Below are positions 9,998 to 18,161 of a stretch of DNA of 64,000 nucleotides, in pieces. A program made the translations under genes and the position numbers. Source of the stretch: Macrostomum lignano (taxonomy: Eukaryota). The notes under the pieces are model-generated. The model saw only the letters and a list, made by a program, of their open reading frames with translations. It did not search any database and was not told the origin of the DNA. Location of the stretch: assembly GCA_002269645.1 (NCBI GenBank), contig NIVC01000763.1, positions 124,001 to 188,000 on the forward strand, given 5' to 3'. Position 1 is the first letter of the stretch. Each line of letters begins with the position of its first letter.

Positions 9998-12900
9998 TCA
10001 GTTGCGATCTGCCAGCCAATCCGTCTCGGCTGGCAGCCTCTGCCCCAGCAGGTCGCAGGCCTCAGTCAGTTGCCTCAGCAGCTGGCGGAGTTCCGCCGTG
10101 CCGCCCGCGACCGCAGCGCTGGCAGCTTCGGCAGCTCCGCCAGCTCCCAGCGGGTGCGCCCTGAGCGCGGCCGCCTGGTAGAACAGGAACAGGTTTCGAG
10201 CTCGCGACCTCAGCAGCTGCCGCAACCGCTCGGTGCCGCCACTGCGGCGAAGCCTTTGCGGCGGAGTCTCCGGCGACGACCGCGGCTCCTGGCTGCTGTC
10301 GCTGGACATCCGCAGCCGCCGGCAGCAGACACTGACGGCAGCAACGCCGCCAGTCAGCAGGTTGAAGGGCGGCGGCCAGTGAGACCGGCCCAGCAGCTGC
10401 CGGCCGAGCTGGTGCCTCTCAATCAGCCACAGCGGCCGGCTTCGGGCTCGCTGCCGGGCCGCCGTGGTGGCAAAGACTCCGGCGGCGGCCGCTGTCAGCA
10501 GCAGGTGGCCGGCGGCCAAGACAGCCAGCAGCGGGCCGAGCTGCAGGGGCCATTGGACGACTGACGGCTTGCCGCAGCCGGAGCCATCGCTAAAGTTGCT
10601 CGCTGCTGCCGCCGCCGCAACGCTCCCAGCCATGGCGTGCAGCGGCTCGATCTCGCCGCCCGCCAGCGCCGCCAGCGCTGCCAACAGGACTCGCCCGACT
10701 GACGGCGGCGGCTGCAGTTGCTGAGCCAGCAGCACCCGGCCAGCCAGCCCGAGGGCGCCGGCCAGGCACAGCCCCATGGCGGCCAGGGGGACGAAGTCGC
10801 GCCTGAGTAGGGCGCCAATCAGCAGCAGGTGGCGCCCTAGCGGTGGCGCCAGAGCGCCAAGCGGGCGCAGCAGCCGCAGCCAGTGAAGGGCGGCTGCAGC
10901 GGCCAAGGCCGCCGCCGGGGACCGGCTGGCCGCTCGGCAGGCCGCTCCGGCCGCCAAACTCGCCGCCTCGGCCAGCTCGGCCAACCAGTCCGACCAGCCC
11001 TGTGGAGTGCAGAGAGTGAGACTGACTGACTGACTGACTGATCTATTAATCGACAGCTTGCTAAGGATTGTTTGATTTGGCAAATATTTTAGTAGAACTA
11101 GTGGGTGTATTTTATTATTATCAACTATGCTATCAATTAATTTTTATTTGCTGTTTCATCGCAGTAGGCAGTTGTGGACTCAGTTTGCTTTATATTTTCA
11201 AATATGTAATAATTGGTAACCATTTTGCGAACAAATTATTTTAACATTATCAAAATACCTGCACGGAATCGGTGCCCAGATAATTGCTATTCACTTCCGA
11301 CTCCCAACAACTCGGATATTGGACTGACTGACTGACTGACTGACTGACTGACTGACTGACTGACTGACTGACTGACTGACTGACTGACTGACTGACTGAC
11401 TGACTGACTGACTGACTGACTGACTGACTGACTGACTGACTGACTGACTGACTGACTGACTGACTGACTGACTGACTGACTGACTGACTGACTGACTGAC
11501 TGACTGACTGACTGACTGACTGACTGACTGACTGACTGACTGACTGACTGACTGACTGACTGACTGACTGACTGACTGACTGACTGACTGACTGACTGAC
11601 TGACTGACTGACTGACTGACTGACTGACTGACTGACTGACTGACTGACTGACTGACTGACTGACTGACTGACTGACTGACTGACTGACTGACTGACTGAC
11701 TGACTGACTGACTGACTGACTGACTGACTGACTGACTGACTGACTGACTGACTGACTGACTGACTGACTGACTGACTGACTGACTGACTGACTGACTGAC
11801 TGACTGACTGACTGACTGACTGACTGACTGACTGACTGACTGACTGACTGACTGACTGACTGACTGACTGACTGACTGACTGACTGACTGACTGACTGAC
11901 TGACTGACTGACTGACTGACTGACTGACTGACTGACTGACTGACTGACTGACTGACTGACTGACTGACTGACTGACTGACTGACTGACTGACTGACTGAC
12001 TGACTGACTGACTGACTGACTGACTGACTGACTGACTGACTGACTGACTGACTGACTGACTGACTGACTGACTGACTGACTGACTGACTGACTGACTGAC
12101 TGACTGACTGACTGACTGACTGACTGACTGACTGACTGACTGACTGACTGACTGACTGACTGACTGACTGACTGACTGACTGACTGACTGACTGACTGAC
12201 TGACTGACTGACTGACTGACTGACTGACTGACTGACTGACTGACTGACTGACTGACTGACTGACTGACTGACTGACTGACTGACTGACTGACTGACTGAC
12301 TGACTGACTGACTGACTGACTGACTGACTGACTGACTGACTGACTGACTGACTGACTGACTGACTGACTGACTGACTGACTGACTGACTGACTGACTGAC
12401 TGACTGACTGACTGACTGACTGACTGACTGACTGACTGACTGACTGACTGACTGACTGACTGACTGACTGACTGACTGACTGACTGACTGACTGACTGAC
12501 TGACTGACTGACTGACTGACTGACTGACTGACTGACTGACTGACTGACTGACTGACTGACTGACTGACTGACTGACTGACTGACTGACTGACTGACTGAC
12601 TGACTGACTGACTGACTGACTGACTGACTGACTGACTGACTGACTGACTGACTGACTGACTGACTGACTGACTGACTGACTGACTGACTGACTGACTGAC
12701 TGACTGACTGACTGACTGACTGACTGACTGACTGACTGACTGACTGACTGACTGACTGACTGACTGACTGACTGACTGACTGACTGACTGACTGACTGAC
12801 TGACTGACTGACTGACTGACTGACTGACTGACTGACTGACTGACTGACTGACTGACTGACTGACTGACTGACTGACTGACTGACTGACTGACTGACTGAC

Positions 12901-15900: not shown

Positions 15901-18161
15901 AAAATCGGCACCGGCGTGCAGCAGCAGGACGAAGAGGTCGCGCGTGTCGACGCCGCCGCCGCTGCTGGCGGCCGAGTGAAGCGGCGTCCGGCCGCGCCAG
16001 CCCGGCAAGTTGGCGATGCCGCCGCCACCGCCGCCGCCGCCGCCGCCGTTGCCGCGCTGCTGCTCGGCGTCGAGGATGAGGCCGGCCAGCTCCACTCGCG
16101 CTTCGGCGCAGACGCGGTGCAGCGTTGAGTCGCCGTTTGCGTCGCCAAGTCGACAGTCGCCGCCGTGTTGGAGCGCCGCTTTGAAATAGTCGATGGTGTC
16201 CGGCGTGGCCGACAGGTGGACGACAGTATCGCCGCGAGCGTCCGGGATGTTGGGATTGGCGCCCTCCTCTAGAAGAGCCTATCGGACATATGGAATTCGG
16301 ACAGGTAGTGTATCGGATTCGGACAAGTGAGATTTTGGATTCGGAAAGGTAATTTCAGATACGGACAAGTAATTTCGGATCCGGACAGGTAATTTCGGAT
16401 TCGGACAGGTAATTTCGGATCCGGACAGGTAATTTCGCATTCGGACAGATAATTTCAGATTCGGACAGGTTTAACTAACGATTCGGACAGGTAATTTCGG
16501 ATTCGGACAGGTAATTTCAGATTCAGACAGGTAATTTGGGATTCGGACAGGTAATTGCACAGGTAATTTGGGATATTTGAATTTCCTACCATGATAAACC
16601 CGCCTCACTCTCAACCTGATCTCAAACCTCCTGCAGTCGAATTTGCCTCACCTGAAAGCAGGCCAGACTACCGTGCCTCAGCGCCAGGTGCAGCGCCGTG
16701 TTGCCCTCTTTGTCCAATGCGTTCAAATCGCCCCCGAACCTGGCAACCAGGTGGATGACATCGGCGCGAAGGTTTCTCGGACAGGTGGCCTCGTGGATCA
16801 GCAAGGTGCCACTGTTGGCGTCCACCACCAGGTTGGCCGACTGGCCGGCTGAGAACTGCCGCTCCAGCTCGGACAGGTCCAGCGCATGATAGGAGGGCCG
16901 CTTCTTCTGCCCCTGCTGCTGCGGCTGACGGTGGGAATGGGGCTGCGTGAATGGGGTGGGTGATTTGGGTGGGTGATTGGGGTGGGTGATTGGGGTGGGT
17001 GATTGGGGTGGGTGATTGGGGTGGGTGATTGGGGTGGGTGATTGGGGTGGGTGATTGGGGTGGGTGATTGGGGTGGGTGATTGGGGTGGGTGATTGGGGT
17101 GGGTGATTGGGGTGGGTGATTGGGGTGGGTGATTGGGGTGGGTGATTGGGTGGGTGATTGGGGTGGGTGATTGGGGTGGGTGATTGGGGTGGGTGATTGG
17201 GGTGGGTGATTGAGGTGGGTGGAGTCACTTGTTATTCTGATTCATTATGTCAATTTTTCTGCTTTTACACTGCTTCAAGCTGACAATTCAGCTATTAATA
17301 TTTGTTTCATTAAACAGAATTTTTTCAGCTTCTCAAATGCATTTTGCTGACAAACCCCCTGTTCGGTTTTGCTTAATTAATGTTAACAGGCCGCTCTTCT
17401 GAACCGCATGACAAATCCTTCCTGTCTAATGGAAGAAAGTGAATTTTGCTTTTCCAAACAAAAAGACACCGCCTTCTCCCTTAATCCTCTTTGCCGCTTT
17501 CCCTCAGCTCAAAGGCATTGAAATCCAGAAAGCTGAGCTCAAAGCTCCCTCCCGCTTCGCCTCTCTTCTCATCCGTGCTGCTAGAAAATCCGATCCCCGC
17601 AATTACTGCCGCCCGCCTCTTTCATCTGCTTTCCTGGAAATCTCGTCGCTCGCAACATAATGGGACTCGGCTCTGCAGCGCCGCAGCTGGCTCTGCCTCA
17701 GTCAGAGTTTTTTAAACAGAGTTTGCGAACTGCATGGCACTGAGCGGTTGGCTGTCTGTCCGCGTTAGTGCTTCTCTCTGCGGTGCGCCTGTCTGCGCCT
17801 TAGGCCTTGCGTGTCTTTCGTGTCTGTCTGTCTGTCTGTCTGTCTGTCTGTCTGTCTGTCTGTCTGTCTGTCTGTCTGTCTGTCTGTCTGTCTGTCTGTC
17901 TGTCTGTCTGTCTGTCTGTCTGTCTGTCTGTCTGTCTGTCTGTCTGTCTGTCTGTCTGTCTGTCTGTCTGTCTGTCTGTCTGTCTGTCAGTCTGTCTGTC
18001 TGTCTGTCTGTCTGTCTGTCTGCCTGTCTGTCTGTCTATCTGTCTCTCTGTCTGTTTCGCACGATCGTCAGTCAATGAAACCCTACCGGTGTCTCGGCAG
18101 CTCCGGCCACTCTGCCTCTGTCGCCTATATCGCCAGCTCGATCAGAGTCCTCCAGCTGCAT
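9998..18161 (-). CDS. Ankyrin-repeat protein with a TRPM/TRPS-like channel core, about 1080 aa; exons 18161-18087, 16924-16652, 16278-15295, 14972-14291, 14006-13780, 10999-9998
   Basis: About six ankyrin repeats (EGNTALHLA, RGDTVVHLS, NGDSTLHRV, RGRTPLHSA). MHR4-like segment (WSVLSGSLHLA..YGGCSPLDLAAIGRCETF..WEAAWRG). S4-S5-like HWLRLLRPLG..LGRHLLLIGALL, pore-like GGEI, TRP-domain-like WLIERHQL..WPPPFNLL and a C-terminal coiled coil. Phases join 0,0,0,1,0. The first exon and the donor at 15294 are the least certain parts. Confidence 0.8.
11042..11322 (+). repeat. Near-identical direct copy of 8875-9156 inserted in a GACT microsatellite
   Basis: About 280 bp with only about 2 differences seen (one substitution, one 1-bp indel); GACT units on both sides. 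Confidence 0.92.
11323..13728. repeat. 2.4-kb nearly pure (GACT)n microsatellite
   Basis: Direct inspection; lies in the last intron of the channel gene. Confidence 0.98.
14019..14281. repeat. Same 42-bp minisatellite, about 6 copies, filling intron 4 of the channel gene
   Basis: Same unit and orientation as 1-968. Confidence 0.95.
15007..15276. repeat. About 22-bp minisatellite (ATCTAGACAAAATCTACAGAGA), intronic
   Basis: Direct inspection. Confidence 0.9.
16285..16570. repeat. 20-bp minisatellite (TTCGGACAGGTAATTTCGGA), intronic
   Basis: Direct inspection. Confidence 0.88.
16951..17220. repeat. 13-bp G-rich minisatellite (GGGGTGGGTGATT)n
   Basis: Direct inspection. Confidence 0.95.
17820..18056. 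repeat. (TGTC)n microsatellite
   Basis: Direct inspection. Confidence 0.97.

Follow-up and report, generated by a model that had tools for sequence, protein, structure and literature searches.

A probable, very divergent paralogue of the flatworm ankyrin-bearing TRPM-like channel family in Macrostomum lignano

Results

A six-exon gene with repeat-filled introns

We analysed a 64,000-nucleotide window of the genome of the flatworm Macrostomum lignano (contig NIVC01000763.1, positions 124,001 to 188,000 of the forward strand), and all positions given below refer to this window. A channel locus occupies 9998-18161 on the minus strand, where six exons in compatible phase encode a product of 1086 amino acids with ankyrin repeats followed by a TRPM-type channel core. 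The model was built by reading the three minus-strand frames, which yielded five GC-rich open segments and an upstream exon with an ATG. Its acceptors are AG throughout and its donors are GT, save for one GC donor. An initial annotation, made from the letters alone, had proposed six phase-compatible exons and about 1080 amino acids, and our model with its matching phases bears this out, exon 1 being speculative.

The putative exon 1 (18087-18161), read from the sequence, comprises an ATG and 25 codons and ends in phase 0 at the donor GTAGGG. Its GC content at third codon positions (GC3) is only 0.56, and neither BLASTP nor tblastn found a homologue aligning with it. An exon of some kind must nevertheless lie upstream, since no in-frame ATG occurs in exons 2 and 3 ahead of residue ~345. 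An alternative first exon at ~17657 (ATGTTGCGA..., donor GGCA/GTAATT) was rejected, as it is in phase 1 and matches no exon 2 acceptor.

Exon 2 (16652-16942, donor CAG/GTGAGG) starts at a cag acceptor at the end of a 13-bp tandem array and encodes an N-terminal stretch and ankyrin repeats 1-2, with Pfam Ank matches and tblastn matches of paralogues at 16873-16649. Exon 3 (15295-16278, donor AAG/GCGAGC) encodes ankyrin repeats 2-6, which extend up to 15859, and a helical linker, as placed by Pfam and tblastn. The linker ends in exon 4 (14291-14972), which also contains an MHR4-like domain (14448-14882) and the start of the pre-S1 region; tblastn matches here reached 35-40% identity with E-values down to 1e-28. 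Exon 5 (13780-14006) covers pre-S1, S1 (13879-13947) and S2 (13792-13854), located by the alignment and by helices at residues 696-719 and 728-750 of the full-length AlphaFold model. Exon 6 (9998-10999) runs from S3 to the C-terminus and closes with a TGA stop at 9998-10000. It holds S3 (10928-10996), S4 (10850-10915), the S4-S5 linker with S5 (10721-10849), the pore helix with the motif GGEI (10640-10702), S6 (10463-10546), the TRP helix WLIERH...PPPFNLL (10355-10438) and the C-terminal helices (10001-10234).

All five introns, the putative intron 1 included, contain a tandem array (Tandem Repeats Finder). Putative intron 1 holds a (TGTC)61 microsatellite (17812-18055), and a 13-bp array of ~22 copies, pyrimidine-rich on the minus strand, lies directly upstream of the exon 2 acceptor (16938-17221). 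There is a 20-bp array of ~13 copies in intron 2 (16295-16556), a 22-bp array of 12 copies in intron 3 (15005-15276) and a 42-bp minisatellite of 6.2 copies in intron 4 (14019-14280). The 42-bp unit also builds a 23-copy array at 1-968. Most of intron 5, between S2 and S3, is filled by a (GACT)602 microsatellite (11322-13729; period 4, 602 copies, 99% matches), which is the 2.4-kb microsatellite that had been described as splitting the gene.

Exons 2-6 (16942-9998) have an in-frame GC3 of 0.82-0.87 (0.84 overall), like the neighbouring genes. They contain no stop in 1061 codons, compared to 13.9 expected from position-specific composition (P ~9e-7), and the other two frames contain 23 and 8 stops. 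The K/V junction over the GC-AG intron between exons 3 and 4 aligned with the family without a gap.

Ankyrin repeats precede a TRPM-type core

The product begins with six ankyrin repeats, which a helical linker joins to an MHR4-like domain. Next come a voltage-sensor-like S1-S4 and an S5-pore-S6 module, followed by a TRP helix and further helices at the C-terminus. In the ankyrin region we found matches to Pfam Ank_2, Ank, Ank_3, Ank_4 and Ank_5 (E 4e-15 to 1e-9), and the full-length AlphaFold model contained six helix-turn-helix pairs at residues 66-280 with a predicted local distance difference test score (pLDDT) of 74-91. The MHR4-like region was 35-40% identical in tblastn to family members that match PF25508, was modelled at pLDDT 82-93 and aligned with TRPM MHR4 in a profile search. 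In the alignment, GGEI falls at the (Y/V/L)GE(V/Y) selectivity filter and WLIERH...PPPFNLL at the TRP helix. The latter, PLWLIERHQL...WPPPFNLL in full, fits the family pattern LW.[FA]ER[YH] ... PPP[FL]N, as seen in ALWQFERYDL...PPPLNVL, SLWLFERYDL...PAPLNIL and ALWLAERYKM...PPPFNIL of other members. The C-terminus, for which the initial annotation listed a coiled coil, forms long helices in the full-length model. The roughly six ankyrin repeats, the MHR4-like helical region, the six hydrophobic segments and both motifs claimed in the initial annotation thus all held up. The Pfam search that it had suggested recovered Ank families and no LSDAT_euk, LSDAT_prok (SLOG) or Nudix match in the modelled protein, though an unseen exon farther upstream is a slight possibility. 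Ion_trans was not recovered either, and PF25508 fell below threshold.

Long introns packed with repeats lie between the ankyrin and channel exons, and these exons were joined by reading genomic sequence alone, which raises the possibility that an ankyrin gene and an adjacent channel gene were wrongly spliced together. The homologues point to a single gene instead. Residues 56-1085 of the window protein aligned with residues 19-1084 of the M. lignano protein P0187 in one BLASTP alignment (E 6e-86). With P0040, P0045 and P0041, too, a single collinear alignment took in everything between ankyrin repeat 1 and the helices at the C-terminus, and phmmer gave E-values of 1e-64 to 1e-76. When ten M. 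lignano paralogues were searched against the whole window by tblastn, every match lay on the minus strand within exon 2, 3, 4 or 6, and the matches followed the exon order; no further ankyrin exons were found upstream. A break between matches at residues 84/85 sits no more than 3 nucleotides from the exon 2/3 junction. Both halves are thus covered by single M. lignano proteins, and single proteins of other species span them collinearly as well. The same architecture is present in 16/16 relatives from several flatworm classes. It is shared by Sm.TRPM_MCLZ (Smp_333650), the Schistosoma mansoni cation channel that meclonazepam opens. That protein contains 'multiple ankyrin-like repeats', and amplification from cDNA followed by expression yielded a working channel (PMC10788528). 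The sequence comparisons therefore make two neighbouring genes, the outcome that would have undone the initial annotation, appear very unlikely.

A flatworm family with ankyrin repeats in place of SLOG

To gather the family, we took the first homologue without its ankyrins as the query of an exhaustive HMMER search, which returned 1833 relatives. The top tier forms a distinct group consisting of at least ten M. lignano protein clusters and single genes of parasitic flatworms. These include the trematodes Opisthorchis, Dicrocoelium, Fasciolopsis, Paragonimus and Echinostoma, the cestodes Schistocephalus and Hymenolepis, and the monogenean Protopolystoma. All family members that bear a species name are flatworms. 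The next tier consists of flatworm TRPMs, several with SLOG, together with proteins from other phyla that are TRPM or TRPM2-like. When two aligned non-ankyrin sequences served as query in a word-indexed search, no matches were obtained, not even to the query's own relative, as Ala-rich words probably swamped the candidates.

A Pfam census of 16 members found Ank in 16/16, Ion_trans in 14/16, the TRPM2-like domain PF25508 in 10/16 and SLOG in 0/16, while control TRPMs did match LSDAT_euk. Nudix matched neither the window protein nor any of its 15 relatives. The combination of ankyrins with a SLOG-less TRPM core is therefore common to the flatworm family and did not originate in the window gene. 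This modifies an earlier proposal of a lineage-specific chimera in which ankyrins replaced SLOG. The architecture was described correctly, but the fusion is family-wide in flatworms, and the ankyrin N-terminus and SLOG loss of TRPM_MCLZ were already published in 2023-2026 (PMC10788528, PMC11731825, PMC12861061). Sm.TRPM_MCLZ 'lacks the NH2-terminal MHR1/2 or SLOG domain' (PMC11731825), and its clade, which 'could be referred to as TRPM-like', is placed beside TRPM in published trees (PMC12861061).

Two further TRPM-type proteins from the HMMER search, P0059 and P0096, have N-terminal ankyrins and SLOG, followed by the TRPM2-like domain and Ion_trans, and group with the flatworm SLOG-TRPMs in a neighbour-joining tree. 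If they represent real single transcripts, ankyrins may predate the loss of SLOG in the TRPM_MCLZ-like line.

The parasite branch of the family appears, by its residues, to be the TRPM_MCLZ orthogroup. The S. mansoni positions L826, I892, D893, H946, R1120 and T1121 mapped onto this branch at matching spacing, as did the published pocket variants L826F, I892L, D893E, H946Y/F, R1120K and T1121S (PMC12861061, Table 1). In Plagiorchiida the pocket residues are L-H (S1), I-D (S3), Y (S4) and R-T (TRP helix), for which cestodes have F, I/L-E, F and K-S. The equivalents of R1120 and T1121 lie ~4 residues closer in trematodes, and the cestode K/S were assigned by motif. One family model, the 1906-residue P0035 of Opisthorchis viverrini, contains two Ion_trans stretches, a doubling that probably reflects a fusion of the alternative channel exons 3a and 3b (PMC12861061). 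Among the word-indexed matches of the Dicrocoelium channel half there was no Schistosoma sequence, and orthologues from Paragonimus, Hymenolepis, Echinostoma and Protopolystoma were found.

The channel core groups with TRPM

Because ankyrin repeats typically precede the channel in several other TRP families, and NOMPC appeared at rank 8 when the full-length model was searched with Foldseek, one could read the protein as an ankyrin TRP of the TRPA, TRPC, TRPN or TRPV type that merely resembles TRPM. Comparisons made with the ankyrins removed argue strongly against this. A profile of the window protein and ten relatives matched TRPM structures in the PDB at E 2e-86 (nvTRPM2, 6co7), in a single stretch that began at MHR4 and reached the TRP helix, and every one of the best 60 profile matches was a TRPM. 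The non-ankyrin part of the window protein gave weak PDB matches by itself, with TRPM1 at E 0.021 from S4 to the TRP helix, and the TRP families represented in these 17 weak matches were TRPM1, TRPM2 and TRPM3 alone. Its AlphaFold model (pLDDT 65.9, predicted template modelling score 0.61, pore below pLDDT 50) was compared with known structures by Foldseek. The top 50 matches were all TRPM (TRPM3, TRPM2, TRPM7, TRPM4 and TRPM5) at E ~2e-11 and a template-modelling score (TM-score) of ~0.5. Furthermore, the family has an MHR4-like domain (PF25508) between the ankyrins and S1, and a TRPN protein scored 39 bits on the family hidden Markov model (HMM) compared to 160-285 for TRPMs. We consider an origin in another ankyrin TRP family extremely improbable; the transmembrane region sides with TRPM rather than with TRPA, TRPC or TRPN, the groups whose inclusion of it would have overturned the initial annotation.

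We scored the transmembrane region with clade HMMs in place of a neighbour-joining tree, whose S1-TRP distances were saturated. The window protein scored 42 bits with the family HMM and 48 with that of its Macrostomum subset, but only 17 with flatworm SLOG-TRPMs and 13 with other TRPMs. Judged by these scores, the transmembrane region belongs with the flatworm ankyrin TRPM-like family.

The initial annotation had also offered a very divergent member of TRPS (soromelastatin, CED-11-like). Such an assignment could account for a protein that is TRPM-like yet non-canonical and whose TRP box departs from WKFQRY. However, the definition of TRPS includes SLOG at the N-terminus and Nudix at the C-terminus, and a search for ankyrins in that family found none (PMC7306681, section 6). 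The window protein and its 15 relatives present the opposite content, having ankyrins and neither SLOG nor Nudix. The nearest relatives of the window protein are flatworm TRPM_MCLZ-like proteins, which stand beside TRPM in published trees (PMC12861061). The TRPS option thus fails on domain content and is highly improbable.

The pore module is eroded and its composition skewed

With the family HMM of the transmembrane region, members scored 290-480 bits in a leave-one-out comparison and the TRPN outgroup 39-97, so that the 42 bits of the window protein lie far below its own family. Across 139 TRPM-type sequences, 54 alignment columns show conservation of 70% or more, and the window protein retains 28 of them (52%), compared to a median of 86% and 66% in the next lowest TRPM-type sequence. 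The S6 motif N-L-L-I-A, 91-99% conserved, reads A-A-A-A-G, the WN..D motif of S3 is lost, and LGP has become LGR.

This divergence is not evenly spread. Similarity to paralogues in the ankyrin, linker, MHR4-like and C-terminal regions amounts to 83-94% of the level among paralogues, but to only 37-38% in the S4S5-S5 and pore-S6 regions (for pore-S6, identity is 0.37 of the paralogue level). The pore modules of the paralogues are 45-55% identical to each other and 17-20% identical to that of the window protein. Amino acid composition is shifted as well. The residues Phe, Tyr, Met, Ile, Asn and Lys (FYMINK) make up 7.8% of the window protein and Gly, Ala, Arg and Pro (GARP) 41.8%, compared to ~24% each in paralogues, while the neighbouring genes are ordinary. 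In the transmembrane region, FYMINK falls to 6%, whereas the 140 comparison sequences all lie at 24-36%. What is new here is this extreme shift towards Gly, Ala, Arg and Pro and the degenerate pore module in one copy, along with cytosolic domains that have diverged no further than those of paralogues and a frame that has stayed open.

Such features would also be expected of a decaying, unexpressed or recently dead paralogue, whose frame stays open just because GC-rich sequence is poor in stops. The loss of nearly half of the conserved columns, the altered S6 motif, the low family HMM score and the skewed composition amid normal neighbouring genes all fit such a dead copy, as does the lack of a start codon within the exons that show homology. 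Conversely, the deficit of stops was calculated against the position-specific composition itself, and the other frames do contain stops. Every splice junction is intact and in phase, and similarity has been lost in the transmembrane module only, which is rich in exactly those residues that a GC shift removes. We regard a dead copy as unlikely, though as an alternative to be taken seriously.

The simplest reading of the sequence is that the locus is a paralogue under strong GC-biased substitution in which constraint on the pore may have weakened while the frame is still selected. Because the pore is eroded while the cytosolic domains and the frame are kept, the predicted product is not a typical channel but a subunit that is altered, conducts weakly or does not conduct. 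Normal cation conduction is somewhat less likely than not. A more specific scenario, to which we give only a small probability, is that GC-driven drift specific to this gene replaced almost all transmembrane Phe, Tyr, Met, Ile, Asn and Lys by Ala, Gly, Arg, Pro and Leu, with selection preserving the 1061-codon frame and the cytosolic ankyrin and MHR4 scaffold. The product would then have been retained for a role in which a normal pore is dispensable, as a subunit of the expanded Macrostomum family that does not conduct or that modulates other members, or as a channel with a radically rebuilt gate.

Neighbouring genes and mobile elements

The window consists of GC-rich exons, with introns and spacers packed with tandem arrays. 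Its largest repeat is an 18-bp unit in 207 copies (83% matches, 3.7 kb, 4493-8191) with strong GC and AT skew. Pfam matches identified a GFAT-like SIS domain (2413-4587), a histidine phosphatase of branch 2 (27600-31004), a sideroflexin (33838-35275) and a casein-kinase-like kinase (57984-61281). These look like an ordinary set of animal genes, and their introns also hold micro- and minisatellites. The GC-rich exons and repeat-laden introns had at first suggested a dinoflagellate or an alga, a reading set aside in view of this gene set and of the flatworm proteins that are the nearest homologues.

A non-LTR (long terminal repeat) retrotransposon lies on the plus strand at 47450-52533, between minus-strand exons with WD40 repeats (44180-45180 and 53336-54951). 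It has an intact ORF of 1277 amino acids with endonuclease, reverse transcriptase and RNase H (Pfam), preceded by a 422-residue ORF without Pfam matches, and copies of a 32-bp array occur on both sides of it (46609-47245 and 52626-52790). A plus-strand open frame of 388 amino acids at 40693-41856 contains several hydrophobic segments and has the look of a receptor-type membrane protein, with no Pfam match. A 253-bp non-coding stretch at 40355-40601 shares 83% identity with DNA that lies immediately downstream of the gene for the M. lignano channel paralogue P0002 (L001, 14437-14672), and AT-rich repeats at 25600-26280 match the P0002 locus at 65-70%. The stretch at 40355-40601 is probably a mobile element shared with that locus, in keeping with a Macrostomum source.

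Discussion

The locus at 9998-18161 is very probably a single protein-coding gene, a very divergent paralogue of the flatworm ankyrin-bearing TRPM-like family whose characterised member is TRPM_MCLZ. Several observations count against this interpretation. A Pfam scan of the window protein alone gives ankyrin families and neither Ion_trans nor PF25508, and individual ORFs likewise matched ankyrin families only. The AlphaFold models are of moderate quality (pLDDT 66-67, pore <50) and were shaped by the family alignment. Exon 1 and the start codon are putative, within a splice model that was read from the genome sequence. In the neighbour-joining tree of the S1-TRP region the window protein fell inside the clade, but the exact clade recurred in 11/60 replicates and a position purely among members in 27/60, and the tree references comprised no TRPS, TRPC, TRPA or TRPV sequences. 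Finally, the tie to S. mansoni TRPM_MCLZ was drawn from published residue numbers and variants.

If our interpretation is correct, the exchange of SLOG for ankyrins would have occurred once, in or before the flatworm ancestor, and the window gene would have inherited it. By analogy with the family and with TRPM structures, four subunits would surround a central pore, and the C-terminal helices probably assist in this assembly. Signals from the cytosolic layers, formed by the ankyrins and MHR4, and from the pocket in S1-S4 may reach the gate in S6 by way of the S4-S5 linker and TRP helix.

The locus adds no new TRP family and no new domain fusion. It does add a gene structure unlike that of the three-exon parasite genes, and an expansion of the family in a free-living flatworm lineage. 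It also provides a paralogue in which an intact frame and persisting cytosolic domains go together with a pore module that has drifted very far. The family as a whole is the clearest case of a TRPM-type core that exchanged SLOG for ankyrin repeats, and it includes a validated anthelmintic target, the schistosome meclonazepam receptor.

The closest relatives of the window protein are its M. lignano paralogues (E 1e-64 to 1e-86, 25-27% identity), among them PAA86244.1 (P0187), PAA64338.1 (P0040), A0A1I8J777 (P0041) and BOX15_Mlig007500g6 (P0002). They share its collinear architecture, although the P0002 gene has one short intron and the window gene has five long, repeat-filled ones. With TRPM_MCLZ and its orthologues, the window protein shares the N-terminal ankyrins, the absence of SLOG/MHR1-2 and Nudix, the TRPM-type S1-S6 and TRP helix, and the motifs LW(L/Q)(F/A)ER(Y/H) and PPP(F/L)N. 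Like TRPM_MCLZ, it retains both histidines of the S1 drug pocket (MHLLAH). The two differ in sequence, with ~17-20% identity over the aligned non-ankyrin region or the whole length, and in gene structure, since the window gene has six exons and a channel domain broken between S2 and S3, whereas TRPM_MCLZ has three exons with the whole channel in one. Compared to the TRPM_MCLZ group, the pore and gate residues of the window protein are eroded. In addition, the drug-determining position in S4 is apparently Arg and not His, Tyr or Phe, a tentative assignment from an alignment with one indel.

Further afield, the canonical TRPMs (TRPM2, TRPM3, TRPM7, TRPM4, TRPM5 and TRPM8) are the solved structures that match best in both sequence and fold. 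What they have in common with the window protein extends from the MHR4-like domain through S1-S6, with the G-E of the filter, to the TRP helix and C-terminal helices, but the window protein has ankyrins instead of SLOG/MHR1-2 and neither a Nudix nor a kinase domain. TRPS (CED-11-like) proteins are, like the window family, TRPM relatives outside the canonical clades, with the domain content reversed. NOMPC/TRPN and other ankyrin TRPs also have an ankyrin N-terminus before a six-transmembrane TRP core; compared with NOMPC/TRPN, the window protein has only six repeats, and its transmembrane core and juxtamembrane domain are of the TRPM type.

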